This document shows, in pieces, positions 15,655 to 47,452 of a stretch of DNA of 64,000 nt. The notes under the pieces were generated by a model that was not told where the DNA came from, ran no database searches, and worked only from the letters and a program-made list of their open reading frames with translations. Position numbers and translations under genes: made by a program. The stretch's first letter is position 1. Each line of letters starts with the position of its first letter. The stretch covers positions 124,001 through 188,000 of IMG/VR virus record IMGVR_UViG_3300046003_007892; one strand, given 5' to 3'.

Positions 15655-15730
15655 GCGTCGTTAGCTCAGATGGTAGAGCATCGGCTTCTAACACCGAGGG
15701 TCACGGGTTCGAGTCCCGTCCGACGCGCCA
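15655..15730 (+). tRNA. tRNA with CUA anticodon (amber suppressor candidate)
   Basis: 76 nt; D stem GCTC/GAGC; anticodon stem TCGG/CCGA with C31-A39 mismatch puts CTA at 34-36 (15688-15690); T arm ACGGG/CCCGT; G73, encoded CCA. Confidence 0.85.
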
Positions 15731-17055: not shown

Positions 17056-17146
17056 GCGAGGGTGCCAGAGCATTCAAATGGGCCGGACTGCAAATCCGGT
17101 GGAGCCAATAACTCCTACGAAGGTGCGAATCCTTCCCCTCGCTCCA
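17056..17146 (+). tRNA. tRNA-Cys(GCA) with long variable arm (class II / Tyr-like scaffold)
   Basis: Acceptor GCGAGGG/CCCTCGC, U73, CCA; CCGGA-CTGCAAA-TCCGG; V-arm GGAG-ccaataa-CTCC; T arm GAAGG-TGCGAAT-CCTTC. Confidence 0.88.
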
Positions 17147-21972: not shown

Positions 21973-22287
21973 ATGGAATGGTTCACCGAAAAATATGCAG
22001 CCCTGATGGCCAACGAAGTTTTCGTCTCGTTGGCCATGAGCGTGATCGCAGCCGTTGGCTCCACCATGCTGGTCGTCATGCCCCTCCTGGTCTGGTGCGC
22101 ATGGCGGGTGCGGAAGCACATGGCCGACATGGTCAACTGGGACGTCGTCCGCGTCGTCACCACGCAGGCCCACGAATATCAGATTCATCGAACCACCGGC
22201 AAGCGACGTGTGACCTCGCGTCTCATCCCCGTTCCGCCCATCGACAAAGACTGGCTGGCCGGTCGCACGGAGAAACTCCATGACTGA
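21973..22287 (+). CDS. Hypothetical membrane protein
   Basis: One TM segment; upstream TTGACA promoter. Confidence 0.65.
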   Translation: MEWFTEKYAALMANEVFVSLAMSVIAAVGSTMLVVMPLLVWCAWRVRKHMADMVNWDVVRVVTTQAHEYQIHRTTGKRRVTSRLIPVPPIDKDWLAGRTEKLHD

Positions 22288-26994: not shown

Positions 26995-27464
26995 CGGCCG
27001 CCCTTGCGGAGCTTGATCGGTTTCGTCTTCGGCAAACGGACCTCGAACAGCCCGTAGGTGAACGTCAGACGATGCGAGATCATGACCCGCTCGGATTCAT
27101 AGTCGCGCCTCATCGGCGTGATGCGGTCGTGCCGTTTCAGCACGAGATCGCTGAACACCTTGGTGTGCCCCTCTGTGAATTCGTCCGGGTCACCCTTGAC
27201 CGAAATCGTGAGCCCGTCTGGACAGTGGAGGCGCGACATCATCATGGCCACCTGACCATGGCGGTCCTCCGAGACGGTGAACCTTACGGTTTTCTTCGCG
27301 ACGTTGAAGTGGATGTTCCACACGAACCGACCGATATCTTCGCAGTCGTTGAGGGCCAGGAAGACCGAGTTGACGGTGACCTCGAAGTCTTGGTTGAGGG
27401 CCGTGAAATCGTCATCCTCTCCAAGAAAATGTTCGTCCTCGGGGTCGTACTTGTAGACGCTCAC
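26991..27464 (-). CDS. Hypothetical protein, paralog of 26578..26994
   Basis: DFEVTV...HRLTFTYGLFEV. Confidence 0.7.
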   Translation of the reverse strand: MSVYKYDPEDEHFLGEDDDFTALNQDFEVTVNSVFLALNDCEDIGRFVWNIHFNVAKKTVRFTVSEDRHGQVAMMMSRLHCPDGLTISVKGDPDEFTEGHTKVFSDLVLKRHDRITPMRRDYESERVMISHRLTFTYGLFEVRLPKTKPIKLRKGGR

Positions 27465-28072
27465 GCGCCCTTCTCCCCATGGATGGCTTTCACGAGGGCC
27501 ATCTGCGTGGTGAGCAGATGCTTGATGTTCTCGTAGGCGGCCTCCTGGTCGGGGAAGAGGCGACGAGCCTTCTTGATCATCGGCAGGAAGAACTCCTCGC
27601 CCTCAGCCACGTAGGCGAGTTGTTTCTTGGCATTGAAAACGCCCACCATGGAGTTGAAGTTGTGGCCCCGGTCGGCGCCCTTGCCGATGCTCGCATAGGG
27701 GTCTTGAGCGATGCTGGCGAAAACCTCGGTAGGGTTGCGTTTGACGCCCTTGAACTCCTTGGTCATCGCCCAGACAGAGGTCGCGACATCCTCGCCGAAG
27801 CGGCGGGCCTGTTCGTCGCGCGCAATCCCATAGTCTTCGGAGACGTCGTGGAGGAGACAGACCGTCAGGGTCTTCTCCATGTCGCGCAGCGCGGGCAGGG
27901 TGCGGACGTAGTGGCAGATCGCGATCTGATGACTGAACTCCGGCGTGACGCCGTCCTTGCGGAAGCCATTGTGATGGAAAGCTGCGAACTCCATGGCCTC
28001 TAGGGCGAGGTTGTAGCCTCGACCCAGAAGCCAGTATCGGAGGGCGATTTCTTGTTTCTTGAGAGGGTCCAT
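27461..28072 (-). CDS. HD-domain RelA/SpoT-type hydrolase (Mesh1/small alarmone hydrolase-like)
   Basis: AAFHH.G.RKDGVTPEFSH, LLHDVSED, KGADRGHN. Confidence 0.88.
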   Translation of the reverse strand: MDPLKKQEIALRYWLLGRGYNLALEAMEFAAFHHNGFRKDGVTPEFSHQIAICHYVRTLPALRDMEKTLTVCLLHDVSEDYGIARDEQARRFGEDVATSVWAMTKEFKGVKRNPTEVFASIAQDPYASIGKGADRGHNFNSMVGVFNAKKQLAYVAEGEEFFLPMIKKARRLFPDQEAAYENIKHLLTTQMALVKAIHGEKGA

Positions 28073-28102: not shown

Positions 28103-28789
28103 TCAAGAAGAAGGAGCATCAATTCCCGCAAGTCTGGCAAGAATTTCGCAGTCGCCTACGTTGACCTCGACCAGACCCATTGCTTCGGTGCGGTCAGCGA
28201 AGCATTTGTTCGCAGCTTCGGCCACAGCGACACCCGCATCGCGCTTGCCGTTGTCATATCCCTTGCCTTGTCCGAAGTGATGACCGAGGCCGAACATGAC
28301 GGCGCAGACGAACGTCAGAAGGAGTATGCTGCTGACGATCTCAACCACGCTGTGCTCGCCGGGTTTCTTGACGACGGGCTTGGGCTTCGGGGCATTGGTG
28401 ACGAGGGCGGCAGCCGGTGACACAGCCTCATTGAGGATTTGGCGAGAGCCGGAAAGACCCAGTCGATCACCTAGAGGGCTGTAGCCGTCGCTGATCAACG
28501 GCGCGATCAGACGAAGCTTGTTCAGTTTATCGATTCGGCTGTTTTCCAGTTTGGTGACGTCGAGGAGACCGCGCTCGACCGCAAACGACGTGGCGCCGAG
28601 AACATCACCGATCTCGTCGTGGATGAGGTCCAGGTTGGTCCTCTTCGATTTGTCGTCGGGATTGTAGGAGTCGTAGCCGTGGCGGAGGGTCTTGCCGATG
28701 ATCTGCACGACTTCGCCGCACTCTTCTGACAGGACGCCGATCTCGTATTGATGAGCAAGTTTCTCGGGATGGGGATGACGATTGGACAA
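28103..28789 (-). CDS. MazG-like NTP pyrophosphohydrolase fused to a C-terminal TM region
   Basis: LSEECGEVVQIIGKTLRHG...DEIGDVL; then SILLLTFVCAVMFGLG. Confidence 0.8.
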   Translation of the reverse strand: MSNRHPHPEKLAHQYEIGVLSEECGEVVQIIGKTLRHGYDSYNPDDKSKRTNLDLIHDEIGDVLGATSFAVERGLLDVTKLENSRIDKLNKLRLIAPLISDGYSPLGDRLGLSGSRQILNEAVSPAAALVTNAPKPKPVVKKPGEHSVVEIVSSILLLTFVCAVMFGLGHHFGQGKGYDNGKRDAGVAVAEAANKCFADRTEAMGLVEVNVGDCEILARLAGIDAPSS

Positions 28790-28842
28790 AATATGACCTA
28801 GTGGGACGTGGTTATAGGTCTGTTGCTGTCCCTCAATACGAC

Positions 28843-28867
28843 AAAAGACCGGGGATTAACCCCGGCC
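28843..28867 (-). terminator. Intrinsic terminator
   Basis: GGCCGGGG-ttaat-CCCCGGTC-TTTT on minus strand. Confidence 0.8.
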
Positions 28868-28909
28868 TTATGGTAACCGATAGGGTTCGGCAGAGCCGAA
28901 TTAAATCGA

Positions 28910-29218
28910 TCAGACGGCGCGCAGCGTCGGCGTTGTTTTGCCGCGTTGAATGCCGAACGGTTCTCCCGCGACCTGAAGGGCCTGCTTGGCGGTTTGCAGC
29001 GCGGCGAGGGCCTCGCCGATTTTGTTGATCTGGATGGTCTCCAGTCCAGCCCGCGTCTTCGACAGCGCAGTCAGGCGCGTGATCGAATCGTTGACGACCA
29101 GCAGGTTGCTCGTCAGTTCCTGTTCCAGGAGAGCAGGCAGGGACTGCGAGATCGAATTGATCTGGTCGATCACCGAGAGATCGGTTGTCGGGGCGACAGA
29201 TGCGGGAATTGCGGACAT
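28910..29218 (-). CDS. Small coiled-coil-like protein downstream of the large ncRNA
   Basis: GAGGAGG SD; L/I/A/Q-rich heptads. Confidence 0.75.
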   Translation of the reverse strand: MSAIPASVAPTTDLSVIDQINSISQSLPALLEQELTSNLLVVNDSITRLTALSKTRAGLETIQINKIGEALAALQTAKQALQVAGEPFGIQRGKTTPTLRAV

Positions 29219-29284
29219 GGGTTCCTCCTCAGGAATTTCACAGGATGGTCACAGAATATCCGGTTTCCCAAATTTGGAAAGGTT

Positions 29285-29938
29285 TTTTTCGGACTACGAG
29301 ATGTCCGACTGTCGTCGTCCATCTGCTTCTGTTCGTCTCACTCGCAAGCTCGTTCGCTTGAACATCAGCAATTCAGACACTTAAACAAACAAGTCATCAT
29401 CCCTAGATCGCGAAGCATCACTTTTATCCCCCTATGATTCTGGAGGTCCCCATAGGGGCAGAATCATAGAAGGAAAAGTAATCAGACACCCTGAGTCGGC
29501 TCATGACCAGCCACATCAGCCGCGATGTCGTTTTACGGACGGCTGGCGGTTCCCCGCTACCAGCATGAGCGGCCCAATCCCGGCGAGCTTACTATGGTGA
29601 ACGAGACCTCAGCTTGTTCCTCTGGATATCGATCAGGTCGATTTAATCCCCAGGAGCCTATGTCTCAGCGTGCTATTTTTGTGCCGAACGGTTATGGAAT
29701 TGCTTCCAAGCTTACACGGAGGGCGATGGGCGGACCCCACGTGCACGGATAGACGTCAAGCGTTAGACGTAGCTATCCTCTTTGTTTAAGTGCCTTTTCG
29801 CGAATACGAACTCCGCCGAGGGGCTGACCGCTGGGAAGCAAATCACCTCACTGGTCGTCCTACCCTGTAGCCGGTCATTCTTCCCGACTTTCAGTGTTGA
29901 GGCGGGCATCACCTCTAGTAGCCCTGGACGCGCTATGT
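29285..29938 (-). ncRNA. Unidentified ~650-nt highly structured RNA
   Basis: Own promoter; no credible ORF; 12-bp long-range helix 29378-89/29781-92; 11-bp helix 29432-42/29459-69 extended by G-U only on the minus strand; GGAA and GCAA GNRA loops; G(CUUG)C loop with tandem GA pairs. Confidence 0.8.
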
Positions 29939-29945
29939 AGGGGTA

Positions 29946-29975
29946 ACTATAGAATCGAATCCTCGGAGTCGTCAA
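29946..29975 (-). promoter_or_regulatory. Sigma70-type promoter for the large ncRNA
   Basis: TTGACG-N18-TATAGT. Confidence 0.75.
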
Positions 29976-29993
29976 ATAGAATCAGAGGTTGTA

Positions 29994-30803
29994 TTAGCGG
30001 CACCCCATGGCGCGTCTATACTGTGCGAAGTTTGCTTGCACCCATTGGATTACTACGCTCATGTCGTCGTTCACGAACAGAGGCCGCAATCCCCTGTTCT
30101 GGTTTTTGTTTATCACCTTCCAGGTCCCGCCATCGTTGGCGATGAAGACGATATCGCGGGGGTCAACGTCTGCTCCCCAGAACACGATCTGTTCTTCCTG
30201 ATCGCCGTGGTGGTCACACTTGACGCCTGAGTTCATGAACATGACGGCCTCTCGCCCATACTTGCTGCCGCTGTCGGCATTGCGGTAGTTGGCGTCGTAG
30301 GCGAAATTGTAGCCGCCGTGCTTTTTTGCCTCGTCTGAGAACCACGTAGTCAGCCCGAGCTTGTCCATCTCGTCCATTCCGTACTTGAAACCATAGAGGG
30401 AGATTTCGCGGGCGTTGTCCGAAAAATGGATGAGCCACGTCGTGCGAGGAATCAGGCGATCTTTCCCGAGTGTCATGTGGGCGGTGGTCGGGGCATCGGC
30501 CGGGTCGTGGTGCAAGATCGTACCGATGATATCCTGGGCGCATTCTTTCTGGATGTGCTCGGGGAGCTTGTAGAAAAAATCGGCATCATACGTGATGGAG
30601 TTGGCGAGATCGTTCCAGGTGACCTCTTCGCCCGCCGCCTCATTGGTCTCGTCGGGATAGTTGTCCACGAGCCATGACGCGATATGACTCCAGTGCTGGT
30701 AGGGGTCGAAATCTCCACCCTTCATGTACTGGAGGAAATTCGTGTTGTCGGGAGAATACTTCTCCATCACGGACTCGGCGACGATTTCGAAGTAGGTTTT
30801 CAT
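29994..30803 (-). CDS. Putative internal head protein, ART-like C-domain
   Basis: MKTYFEIVAE resembles the T4 capsid-targeting sequence; WLIHFS...NFAY...DQEEQIVFW; ATAAATA 5 nt upstream. Confidence 0.75.
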   Translation of the reverse strand: MKTYFEIVAESVMEKYSPDNTNFLQYMKGGDFDPYQHWSHIASWLVDNYPDETNEAAGEEVTWNDLANSITYDADFFYKLPEHIQKECAQDIIGTILHHDPADAPTTAHMTLGKDRLIPRTTWLIHFSDNAREISLYGFKYGMDEMDKLGLTTWFSDEAKKHGGYNFAYDANYRNADSGSKYGREAVMFMNSGVKCDHHGDQEEQIVFWGADVDPRDIVFIANDGGTWKVINKNQNRGLRPLFVNDDMSVVIQWVQANFAQYRRAMGCR

Positions 30804-30808
30804 CCACC

Positions 30809-30815
30809 TATTTAT
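30809..30815 (-). promoter_or_regulatory. Late promoter, leaderless configuration
   Basis: ATAAATA-GGTGG-ATG. Confidence 0.7.
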
Positions 30816-30850
30816 TGACTGGCCGGGCCCGGTTGTCCTATCGCTCCCGT

Positions 30851-31261
30851 ATGAACATGTCATTTGAGAGCCACGGCTTCACCTACCTGATCGGGCACCC
30901 GATCACCAAAATCGAAATCGGCAACTCGGGTGCCTATCTGCGTCTGACTGCCTTCGGCGTCGAGTATGCATTCGGAGCCTTCGGTGACTGCTGCTCGCAT
31001 AGTTGGATTGAGCACATCGACGGCGTCGCCGCTTTGCATTCTGGAATCGTTGAGGTCGAAGAAGTCACCCAGACCGTAGACGAGAAAGACAACCGGGACG
31101 AACTCGTTCAGGTGTATTTCTACAAGCTCATTACTGCGCTCGGAAATGTCACCATCGAGATGCGGAATGCCAGCAACGGCTACTACGGTGGCTGGCTGGA
31201 GACTTGCCCGCACGGCACTCCAAAGGACGTCGTGTGGAAGACCATCACGGAGGATTTCTGA
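30851..31261 (+). CDS. Conserved phage hypothetical protein
   Basis: GDCCSHSW...EMRNASNGYYGGWL. Confidence 0.75.
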   Translation: MNMSFESHGFTYLIGHPITKIEIGNSGAYLRLTAFGVEYAFGAFGDCCSHSWIEHIDGVAALHSGIVEVEEVTQTVDEKDNRDELVQVYFYKLITALGNVTIEMRNASNGYYGGWLETCPHGTPKDVVWKTITEDF

Positions 31262-46855: not shown

Positions 46856-47017
46856 ACTGTCCTCCTGACGAGCCAACGGAAATCTCATTGGTCCGTTCCG
46901 CGTCAATAGCCTGGGATTGTGGAAATAACCAGAAGATTTCGTGGTGCGAAAAAACCGTTGCACGTCTGGCTAGTATATGGGATAGAGGTAATCTCGCTTT
47001 CCCCTTGAGGACTTACC

Positions 47018-47452
47018 ATGCCTGTTCAGAGCCGCGACGAACGCATCGACGCCGACCCAACCATCGAAACCATCGAGAAAAAGATCAAGGGCAAGGTCGT
47101 CTACGTCGCCGACAAAGCCAAGGGGGATTTCCTCGCCAAGGCGGTGCTGGTTTCGCGTGGCGCGGACACCAACATGATCGTCCACCTGGAATGGAAGGGC
47201 AAGGACGGCGGCCTTCGGCGCGACACGGCCCCCTACGCCAACATCCGAACGCTCGACGAGGTCGCCTCGGCCCTGAAGTCGGCGGCCACGGACGCGGTCT
47301 CGCGTGAGAACGTCGAGCGCACCGTCACCGACCTTTACGCCAAGGCCAAGACGCTGGTCCCGGACACCCGCCTTCTGCGCGGCACCGCGATGGCGGCCTT
47401 CGGCATCTTCATGGAGCGGGTCAACCGCCGCAAGGGCGACGACACGAAATGA
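47018..47452 (+). CDS. Hypothetical protein
   Basis: GAGG SD, strong codon bias. Confidence 0.7.
   Translation: MPVQSRDERIDADPTIETIEKKIKGKVVYVADKAKGDFLAKAVLVSRGADTNMIVHLEWKGKDGGLRRDTAPYANIRTLDEVASALKSAATDAVSRENVERTVTDLYAKAKTLVPDTRLLRGTAMAAFGIFMERVNRRKGDDTK

Follow-up and report, generated by a model that had tools for sequence, protein, structure and literature searches.

Organisation of the locus

The locus was examined within a 64,000-nt window (positions 124,001 to 188,000 of IMG/VR record IMGVR_UViG_3300046003_007892), which is part of a 240-kb contig of an uncultivated jumbo myovirus. On the minus strand, the stop codon of a gene for a 289-aa protein is followed by a short conserved element, a sigma-70-type promoter and 727 nt (29945 to 29219) without a conserved open reading frame. 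This stretch is followed by a gene for a 102-aa protein, which is led by the Shine-Dalgarno sequence GAGGAGG, and by a hairpin resembling an intrinsic terminator. Only short mechanical ORFs were detected in the 727 nt, for example one of 70 aa at 29763-29975, and TAA, TAG and TGA occur in every frame. A recoded gene, which had been considered because a tRNA of the amber-suppressor type (anticodon CUA) is encoded in the same window, was therefore rejected. The coordinates of all features are compiled in Table 1.

Table 1 Features of the locus and their conservation in the two related lineages L003 and L039. All features are on the minus strand.
Position	Feature	Observations
29979..29992	Conserved element ACAACCTCTGATTC between the stop codon of the upstream gene and the -35 hexamer; may be an UP element or a regulator site	Identical in L003, one change in L039, while the flanking coding sequence diverges
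29946..29975	Sigma-70-type promoter: TTGACG, 18-nt spacer, TATAGT	10 of 12 matches in a consensus scan; TTGACC-18-TATAGT in L003 and TTGACG-18-TATAGT in L039 at the homologous place
29283..29945	Structured RNA domain as a whole, about 660 nt from just after the -10 hexamer to the conserved A-run	Aligns end to end with L003 and L039; consensus-fold energy and compensatory pairs far beyond shuffles; no Rfam match
29799..29930	5' domain: outer helix CGUCC/GGACG (29930-29926 with 29860-29856), inner hairpin GUCGG/CCGGC, hairpin GCGGA/UUCGC (29816-29800)	Compensatory changes in the outer helix and both hairpins; 26-nt insertion in L039
29781..29792	5' strand of the long-range helix (CACUUAAACAAA), preceded by the invariant AAAAGGC	Perfect 12-bp complement of 29389-29378; three compensatory pairs in L003; duplex energy -20.3 in the window, -19.0 in L003 and only -6.9 in L039
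29378..29389	3' strand of the long-range helix (UUUGUUUAAGUG); with the 5' strand closes about 400 nt	As for the 5' strand
29747..29778	Hairpin Pa: GGAUAG/CUAUCC plus ACGUC/GACGU, nearly invariant 8-nt loop U(A/U)ACGCUU	Three compensatory pairs across the three lineages; loop conserved
29713..29745	Hairpin Pb: UGCACG..CGUGUA plus GGGU/GCCC, conserved 9-nt loop CCGYCYAWY	Four compensatory pairs, 100% of cells paired
29695..29708	Hairpin Pc: UGGAA-GCAA-UUCCA, a GNRA tetraloop	Identical in L003; CGGA-GUAAAA-UCCG in L039, with a compensatory closing pair
29685..29694	Invariant single-stranded UAACCGUUCG	Identical in all three lineages and unpaired in the consensus folds
29603..29666	Domain Pd: outer helix GAGAC/GUCUC enclosing a long irregular hairpin	CAGAC/GUCUG in L003 and GAAAC/GUUUC in L039 (two compensatory pairs); all three fold to the same shape
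29518..29574	Three-way junction: Pe (GGCCGC/GCGGCU) holding Pf (GCUGG..CCAGC, capped by GG-GGAA-CC) and Pg (GUC..GAC)	Four compensatory pairs, 92-100% of cells paired
29417..29482	Long hairpin Ph: about 28 bp, pyrimidine-rich 5' strand, conserved 3' strand AGGGGGANAAAAGUGAU	28 (window, 3 of them G-U), 22 and 27 pairs, with 3-6 G-U pairs; weaker as the reverse complement by 8 kcal/mol in the window and by 8-13 kcal/mol overall; eight compensatory pairs
29399..29410	Conserved CGAUCUAGGGAU; its AUCU pairs with RGRU just 5' of Ph	CGAUCUA invariant in all three; helix 100% paired, with changes on one side only
29324..29370	3' hairpin domain Pi: UGCU-GA-UGUUC...GAACA-GA-AGCA with a tandem G-A, enclosing AC-GA-GC-UU-GC-GA-GU, a second tandem G-A	Compensatory UU/AA to GG/CC and C-G to U-A changes in L003; in L039 the outer tandem G-A is replaced by Watson-Crick pairs and the inner hairpin is shortened (read directly)
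29283..29307	Hairpin Pj (CGGAC..GUCCG) followed by the invariant CGAAAAAA run; likely 3' boundary of the structured domain	Stem covaries: CGGAC/GUCCG, CGUAG/CUACG and GGAAU/AUUCC; A-run invariant (read directly)
29222..29235	Hairpin UUCCU-GAGG-AGGAA, occluding part of the Shine-Dalgarno sequence; ATG at 29218-29216	Identical in L003; L039 forms an 8-bp equivalent from a different sequence
28910..29218	Gene for the 102-aa protein, a predicted helical hairpin	Homologs of 102 and 101 aa at the same place in L003 and L039; substitutions by codon position 25/20/41 and 32/22/40; AlphaFold2 pLDDT 74, helices 16-53 and 64-88; no Pfam, PHROG or PDB relative
28841..28867	Intrinsic-terminator-like hairpin GGCCGGGG-UUAAU-CCCCGGUC, followed by UUUUGU	Read from the sequence; not listed by the consensus scan; absent in L003, where the next gene starts at once

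Occurrence in related phages

The same layout, consisting of the upstream gene, the promoter, a gap of 730-760 nt and the small protein gene, was found in only two other related phage lineages (L003 and L039). The gap aligns end to end among the three. Among 1.84 billion representative proteins, the small protein has only these three real relatives, each of which lies directly after the RNA region. Apart from the protein of L039, the remote HMMER hits are filamin and TPR repeat proteins and were regarded as spurious. Neither the small protein nor the upstream protein has a significant match in structure searches against the PDB.

Searches beyond these lineages gave no further members. BLAST against isolated phages returned no match for the region (distant mode), for its 8-kb neighbourhood (near mode) or for the upstream protein (tblastn). 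Exact-pattern scans for conserved blocks in viral contigs, metagenome contigs and species-representative genomes produced, apart from self hits, only chance matches, mostly inside coding genes, as shown by nhmmer and by reading them; the 40 hits of one such scan are redundant copies of a few abundant phage genes. Eight further loci carrying homologs of the 289-aa gene (L004, L005, L007-L010, L077 and L078) do not have the RNA within 3-5 kb, either by synteny or according to two covariance models.

Furthermore, no Rfam model matches any of the three copies. The whole window was searched at gathering scores, and the region and its counterparts in L003 and L039 at E<=10, which returned only chance-level hits, none of which recurred at homologous places. 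This holds for GOLLD (family model of the conserved 3' half), ROOL, OLE, group I and group II introns, RNase P RNA and tmRNA, which had been named beforehand as the families to be checked. ARAGORN detected only two tRNAs in the window (15655-15730 and 17056-17146, about 12 kb away) and no tmRNA. The upstream gene ends with its own stop codon at full length compared with its 30 homologs and is separated from the RNA by the promoter, which is not the arrangement of an intron within a gene.

Evidence for a conserved, non-coding fold

To determine whether the region maintains a secondary structure, we compared consensus folds with column shuffles of the alignments. With two sequences the consensus energy was -155 against -95 +/- 6.5 for shuffles, with 33 compensatory pairs against 20 +/- 3.5. 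With three sequences it was -143 kcal/mol against -81 +/- 6, with 32 compensatory pairs against 13 +/- 4, while the plus strand was weaker (-123) and had more broken pairs. In formal tests of two sub-regions, 96.6% and 95.6% of cells were paired and 7 and 12 pairs had changed on both sides, which none of 500 shuffles reached, whereas slid controls gave 38-54% paired cells and 0-3 such pairs. Of 51 pairs in hairpins checked by hand, 16 were compensatory and one was a mismatch. Four SNPs of a near-identical strain fall in the RNA, and all four are at unpaired positions. Single-sequence folding gave weaker signals, with z-scores of -3.4 on the minus strand, -1.0 on the plus strand and -4.1 for L003. 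G-U pairs favour the minus strand. Since only three independent sequences exist, individual helices rest on few events; this applies above all to the long-range helix, which is weak in L039.

Substitutions in the region show no codon periodicity (94/86/81 mismatches by codon phase) and indels are not multiples of 3, whereas in the small ORF third codon positions change most. Gene callers placed short ORFs in the region, but these are not conserved between the lineages.

These results confirm what the first-pass annotation had observed, namely a promoter-led, ORF-free stretch of about 720 nt with elaborate helices, followed by the 102-aa ORF and a terminator. The perfect 12-bp helix is exact and the long hairpin with its G-U pairs is conserved, and ggatag/ctatcc, gagac/gtctc, tggaa-GCAA-ttcca and AC-GA-G..C-GA-GU all exist and are kept by the relatives with compensatory changes. 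However, the multiway junction as drawn there was wrong in detail: gctcatg/catgagc and acatc/gatgt are present in the window but are not kept in L003 or L039, where the junction GGCCGC/GCGGCU is conserved instead. The minimum-energy fold of the window sequence as a whole was likewise rejected as the conserved structure, because only 34-40% of its pairs that changed stay canonical in the relatives.

Two candidate loop-loop pseudoknots (the Pa loop CGCUUG with CAAGCG, and CGUUCG with CGAACG) are complementary but either invariant or contradicted by the covariation of the local hairpin, and remain unsupported. A search of the window for antisense targets of the invariant loops gave two 11-nt complements (near 22243 and 41852), which is about what chance allows, and the short relatives permit no comparison.

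Relation between the RNA and the small protein

No terminator-like site on the RNA strand and no conserved second promoter lies between the RNA and the small ORF in any lineage, and the RNA was never found without the gene. However, the three lineages are related, syntenic phages that also share the upstream gene, so that these cases are not independent and the adjacency may be plain inheritance rather than functional coupling. The protein is also not consistently basic (pI 6.2, 4.7 and 8.1) and has no recognisable RNA-binding fold. The interpretation of the first-pass annotation, a member of a class such as GOLLD or ROOL or a new class, possibly forming an RNP with the downstream protein, is thus supported only in part: the region is a conserved, strand-specific, heavily structured non-coding RNA domain with its own conserved promoter, not a decayed gene or a DNA repeat element, and it is a new class without a match to any Rfam model, while the partnership rests on adjacency and the missing terminator, which is weak evidence.

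Interpretation

Together, the data are best explained by a new and very rare family of large, autonomously folding phage RNA, carried on a moron-like cassette in a small clade of uncultivated jumbo myoviruses, whose closest isolated relatives are Sinorhizobium phage Phosso and Agrobacterium phage Atu_ph07. What the sequence comparison demonstrates is the conserved promoter, the absence of a terminator or conserved second promoter before the small ORF, the conserved hairpin over its Shine-Dalgarno sequence, and about 660 nt that keep a multi-domain secondary structure through compensatory substitutions. This structure comprises a 5' domain, the long-range closing helix, five or six hairpin arms with invariant loops, a three-way junction, a 28-bp G-U-containing hairpin and a 3' hairpin with tandem G-A pairs. 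We infer, in the absence of expression data, that the cassette is transcribed by host RNA polymerase early in infection and that the 5' 660 nt are a stable RNA and the main functional product, as covarying stems with invariant loops and junctions are what is seen in RNAs with a defined tertiary fold. It is likewise an inference that the helical protein, translated at a throttled rate from the same transcript, binds the RNA and works with it as a ribonucleoprotein, and a role in host take-over or counter-defence is a guess based on the early-type promoter and the moron layout. We put the probability of a functional structured RNA at about 0.9, and that of the RNA-plus-protein partnership, which is our best guess at the function, at about 0.4.

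Alternatively, the structure could be a giant cis-acting leader, a sensor or regulatory platform that only controls translation or stability of the 102-aa gene through the hairpin covering the Shine-Dalgarno sequence. The single predicted transcription unit, the conservation of this hairpin in all three lineages (in L039 with a different sequence) and the constant presence of the gene would be in line with this. We consider it unlikely, because no known aptamer or leader family matches, 660 nt with many invariant loops is far more than known leaders use to control one small gene, and the roughly 60-nt linker between the A-run and the Shine-Dalgarno sequence is the least conserved part, which argues that the structured domain is a separate module and not an expression platform.

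Slightly less likely is an RNA-only particle or trans-acting RNA of the GOLLD/ROOL kind, for example a homo-oligomeric assembly, with the small ORF merely co-transcribed. Size, phage origin, GNRA loops, invariant loops and A-rich single strands would suit kissing-loop and A-minor contacts, which GOLLD, ROOL and OLE use to form RNA-only multimers (PMC12286853). The invariant CGAUCUA holds the palindromes GAUC and, in two lineages, CUAG, and the protein lacks RNA-binding hallmarks. On the other hand, there is no sequence or structure relation to GOLLD or ROOL, no tRNA island is adjacent, and AUCU of the CGAUCUA block is predicted to pair within the molecule.

A ribozyme, either a self-processing element that releases or caps the downstream mRNA or a catalytic RNA acting on a host substrate, appears improbable. 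The covarying stems with invariant junctions and loops and the size would fit large ribozymes, and hairpin Pj plus the A-run mark a sharp domain boundary just before the mRNA part, but no ribozyme or intron model in Rfam matches, no gene is interrupted and no catalytic motif can be named. Finally, a DNA-level element (replication origin, packaging site or remnant of a mobile element) or a decayed or recoded gene, for which the many inverted repeats, the CUA-anticodon tRNA and the called ORFs might speak, is very unlikely given the stop codons in all frames, the missing codon periodicity, the frame-breaking indels, the strand asymmetry, the compensatory changes in stems whose sequences change, the lack of conservation of the called ORFs and the absence of visible tandem or iteron-like repeats in the alignments, which were the only place where repeats were looked for.

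It may be speculated, although we regard this as unlikely, that the RNA and its 102-aa helical partner form a previously unknown kind of viral ribonucleoprotein, or an RNA-scaffolded assembly or ribozyme, made early in jumbo-phage infection and with its own biochemical activity against a host process or defence. This would be a new functional class and not just another sequence family of ornate RNA without assigned function.

Large RNAs with intricate conserved folds are rare, and each one found so far (ribosomal RNAs, RNase P, introns, OLE, GOLLD, ROOL) has revealed new RNA architecture or chemistry. The family described here, from jumbo phages of a lineage distantly related to phages of Rhizobiales, comes with a handle that GOLLD and ROOL lack, a dedicated small protein gene on the same predicted transcript, which makes binding, co-structure and translational control accessible to experiment at a size well suited to cryo-EM. 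It also shows that very narrowly distributed ornate RNAs exist, which surveys requiring several hits in one viral database would miss.

Comparison with known systems

Long structured 5' leaders and riboswitches resemble the region in its position upstream of one gene, with which it is inferred to be co-transcribed, and in the conserved hairpin covering the ribosome-binding site, but it is several times longer than known leaders, matches no aptamer family and has a poorly conserved linker to the ribosome-binding site.

Phage morons are inserted between conserved genes with their own promoter, payload and terminator. The cassette has a sigma-70-type promoter and, in the window lineage only, an intrinsic-terminator-like hairpin, and it lies downstream of a gene whose more distant homologs have other neighbours. 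Its payload, however, is mainly a 660-nt structured RNA rather than a protein, and the terminator is missing in L003.

GOLLD and ROOL RNAs are phage-encoded, 580 to over 800 nt long and have a very complex conserved secondary structure with GNRA loops and invariant loops, no known function and, for ROOL, no known protein partner (PMC12286853). The present RNA shows no sequence or structure similarity to them by covariance model, is not located beside tRNA genes (a position that is typical of GOLLD but not obligatory), would be co-transcribed with a dedicated small protein gene, and is extremely rare, with three lineages against the wide distribution of GOLLD and ROOL.

OLE RNA differs in being cellular (Gram-positive extremophiles and anaerobes) rather than viral; its model does not match, the neighbouring proteins have no Oap-like Pfam hits, and the OLE RNP is membrane-bound through OapA, whereas the 102-aa protein has no predicted membrane segment as read from its sequence. 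Nevertheless, OLE is a roughly 600-nt ornate RNA that is encoded in one operon with the genes of small partner proteins and functions as an RNP (PMC9723947, PMC7936274), and is thus the closest precedent for a large ornate RNA with a co-encoded small protein.

Genomic context and organisation of the cassette

The upstream gene and the small ORF both map at 100% identity to the 240,363-bp viral contig IMGVR_UViG_3300046003_007892, and the neighbouring genes are phage genes. These encode T4-type topoisomerase II subunits, a protein matching tail-sheath and sheath-stabiliser families, a SleB-type endolysin, a MazG-like protein, an HD-domain hydrolase and a kinase-like protein. The best isolated relatives of the topoisomerase are found in Sinorhizobium phage Phosso and Agrobacterium phage Atu_ph07, with an amino-acid identity of about 50%. 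The window therefore comes from an uncultivated jumbo myovirus, while a host among the Alphaproteobacteria is only inferred. Directly downstream of the cassette lie two genes for a MazG-like pyrophosphohydrolase with a hydrophobic C-terminal segment and an HD_4-domain hydrolase, the domains of which suggest a nucleotide- or alarmone-degrading gene pair.

The first-pass annotation had described a promoter-driven, ORF-free, highly structured stretch on the minus strand, followed by a 102-aa ORF and a terminator, and this observation holds. A consensus promoter scan revealed the promoter, and the 727 nt from there to the ATG at 29218 contain only short, non-conserved mechanical ORFs, with all three stop codons present in every frame. 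The terminator-like hairpin downstream of the ORF can be read from the sequence, although the consensus scan did not report it. Every helix that had been listed in the annotation is present in the sequence. Folded alone, the minus strand reached a z-score of -3.4 against dinucleotide shuffles, compared to -1.0 for the plus strand.

Coordinates of the features discussed in the text (window positions unless another contig is named; elements of the RNA cassette are listed 5' to 3')
Feature	Position	Strand	Description
Upstream gene	29994-30863	-	289 aa (called as 269 aa)
Conserved 14-nt element	29979-29992	-	ACAACCTCTGATTC, just upstream of the -35 hexamer; possible UP element or regulator site
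Promoter	29975-29946	-	TTGACG-18-TATAGT
5' domain	29930-29799	-	
Invariant AAAAGGC		-	
Long-range helix	29792-29781 with 29389-29378	-	12 bp
Hairpin Pa	29778-29747	-	Nearly invariant loop U(A/U)ACGCUU
Hairpin Pb	29745-29713	-	Conserved 9-nt loop
Hairpin Pc	29708-29695	-	GCAA loop
Invariant single strand	29694-29685	-	UAACCGUUCG
Domain Pd	29666-29603	-	Closed by GAGAC/GUCUC
Three-way junction Pe/Pf/Pg	29574-29518	-	GGAA loop
Long hairpin Ph	29482-29417	-	Base extended by pairing of RGRU with the AUCU of the invariant CGAUCUA
Hairpin Pi	29370-29324	-	Two tandem G-A motifs
Hairpin Pj and invariant run	29307-29283	-	Pj followed by the invariant CGAAAAAA
Linker		-	Poorly conserved, from the A-run to the ribosome-binding site
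Shine-Dalgarno hairpin	29235-29222	-	Covers the Shine-Dalgarno sequence
Small ORF	28910-29218	-	102 aa, preceded by GAGGAGG
Terminator-like hairpin	28867-28841	-	GGCCGGGG-UUAAU-CCCCGGUC, followed by UUUUGU
12-nt repeated string	29682-29693 and 28951-28962	-	AACCGTTCGGCA
MazG-like pyrophosphohydrolase gene	28103-28789	-	
HD_4-domain hydrolase gene	27461-28072	-	
tRNA with anticodon CUA	15655-15730	+	Encoded CCA end
tRNA-Cys (GCA)	17056-17146	+	88-91 nt
Intergenic stretch resembling the linker	46913-47032	+	Also holds CGAAAAAACC
Small gene as called in L039	L039 1260-1691		143 aa as called; start after the ribosome-binding site at 1386 (101 aa)
ORF called inside the window-type RNA	L036 5895-6041		48 aa

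Conservation of the cassette in related phage contigs

The upstream protein belongs to a family of about 30 proteins in large phage contigs, and our search returned 30 homologs. It has no Pfam or PHROG hit, although one homolog carries an ART-PolyVal domain (PF18760). The AlphaFold2 model is confident (pLDDT 86, pTM 0.79), but it showed no significant fold match in the PDB, and the protein may therefore represent an orphan fold. An initial search with the small protein did not reveal any homologs. The closest homolog of the upstream gene (58% identity) is located on a 4.4-kb Logan contig, hereafter L003, which shows the same layout of upstream gene, a 776-nt gap and a 102-aa gene that is 54% identical to the one in the window. 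The gap aligns along its whole length with 63% identity and contains 14 perfectly conserved blocks of 8-24 nt. A full HMMER search with the two small proteins revealed one further true relative on a 1.8-kb JGI contig, L039, which contains the same upstream gene (59% identity), the same promoter, a gap of about 760 nt that aligns throughout, and a 101-aa homolog. The other hits of this search are filamin and TPR repeat proteins and are spurious. The 14-nt element upstream of the -35 hexamer is conserved in all three lineages, although the adjacent coding sequence diverges.

Near-identical copies of the window type occur in further samples, one of which has four SNPs within the RNA, all at unpaired positions. 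More distant homologs of the upstream gene have other neighbours and showed no match to two covariance models of the RNA, and pattern scans of viral, metagenome and genome collections gave only chance hits. Hence, the family as found comprises three lineages. Public gene calls run into the RNA, as the small gene of L039 is called from an upstream start inside the RNA and a 48-aa ORF is called inside the window-type RNA of contig L036. These look like annotation artefacts.

A conserved RNA secondary structure

To elucidate whether the gap encodes an RNA with a conserved structure, we conducted several tests that control for optimisation bias, and all of these indicate that it does. Since the two sub-regions were aligned to their own covariance models, the respective counts lean towards the structure.

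Tests for conserved secondary structure
Test	Observed	Control
Two sequences, consensus energy	-155 kcal/mol	-95 +/- 6.5 (column shuffles keeping the conservation pattern)
Two sequences, compensatory pairs	33	20 +/- 3.5
Two sequences, plus strand	-127 kcal/mol	
Three sequences, consensus energy	-143 kcal/mol	-81 +/- 6
Three sequences, compensatory pairs	32	13 +/- 4
Three sequences, plus strand	-123 kcal/mol, more broken pairs	
Sub-region 29684-29798, cells paired	96.6%	38-44% (slid partners)
Sub-region 29684-29798, pairs changed on both sides	7	0/500 shuffles reach it; 0 when slid
Sub-region 29401-29580, cells paired	95.6%	39-54% (slid partners)
Sub-region 29401-29580, pairs changed on both sides	12	0/500 shuffles reach it; 0-3 when slid

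A check of the local hairpins by hand revealed 16 compensatory pairs and one mismatch among 51 pairs. The long hairpin Ph has 22-28 pairs, of which 3-6 are G-U pairs, and loses 8-13 kcal/mol as the reverse complement, which fixes the strand. The region is not coding, as mismatches by codon phase amount to 94/86/81 and indels break the frame, whereas third positions change most in the small ORF (25/20/41 and 32/22/40).

The drawing in the first-pass annotation has to be corrected in parts. The helices gctcatg/catgagc and acatc/gatgt, from which a multiway junction had been drawn, are not kept in the relatives, and the conserved junction is GGCCGC/GCGGCU instead. The 12-bp long-range helix has three compensatory pairs in L003, but only a weak counterpart in L039. 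Moreover, the minimum-energy fold of the window sequence is a poor guide, since only 34-40% of its pairs that changed remain canonical in the relatives, and the three single-sequence folds disagree on long-range pairs.

The 12-nt string AACCGTTCGGCA occurs both as the invariant single strand of the RNA and inside the small ORF, where it encodes EPFG. As the copy in the ORF is not conserved in L003, this is probably due to chance. The poorly conserved 3' linker showed a weak similarity (nhmmer, E = 0.001) to another intergenic stretch of the window, which may indicate a shared leader or promoter feature, or chance.

ARAGORN did not detect a tRNA or tmRNA within the region. Elsewhere in the window it detected a tRNA with the anticodon CUA, which is of the amber-suppressor type and labelled tRNA-Pyl. 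In phages, such tRNAs often go with TAG recoding of some genes. A crude test in which TAG was read as sense lengthened stop-free stretches, though only modestly, and does not decide for or against recoding here. The window also contains a tRNA-Cys that is unusually long for this tRNA and may have an insertion or a long extra arm.

Possible mode of action

Our analysis establishes a conserved promoter and a conserved multi-domain fold in three independent sequences, as well as the absence of a terminator-like site on the RNA strand before the ORF in any lineage. It also establishes that the hairpin over the ribosome-binding site is conserved, with L039 building it from a different sequence, and that the small protein is restricted to these three loci in our searches. 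What follows from this for transcription and function is inferred from sequence alone. In this view, the cassette would be an early, moron-like unit transcribed by the host polymerase, and its main product would be the folded RNA, as invariant loops and junctions beside covarying stems point to a defined tertiary structure. This RNA would act together with the small protein, which is predicted to be a two-helix hairpin with a partly basic tail (AlphaFold2, pLDDT 74) and whose translation would be held down by the hairpin over the Shine-Dalgarno sequence. The partnership of RNA and protein remains tentative (probability of about 0.4), since the co-occurrence is not independent evidence and the protein has no RNA-binding hallmark. 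The earlier interpretation as an ornate RNA of a known or new class that possibly forms an RNP with the downstream protein is partly supported.

Of the alternatives, a giant cis-regulatory leader is unlikely but ranks closest, followed by an RNA-only particle or trans-acting RNA of the GOLLD/ROOL kind (PMC12286853), which we consider slightly less likely. A ribozyme is improbable, and a non-RNA element can almost be dismissed.

Comparison with known RNA families

None of the three copies matches an Rfam 15 family at E<=10, which covers GOLLD, ROOL, OLE, HEARO, introns, RNase P, tmRNA, riboswitches and small ribozymes. Furthermore, the RNA does not interrupt a gene. A large survey of structured RNAs in IMG/VR required matches to at least three regions of that database (PMC10690425). 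As the family described here has one contig there, it was probably not reported. The feature is real and represents a new sequence and structure family among the large ornate phage or bacterial RNAs of unknown function, on the evidence of three independent sequences and without expression data. Its distinguishing traits are a dedicated small protein gene, inferred to be co-transcribed with the RNA, and a very narrow distribution.
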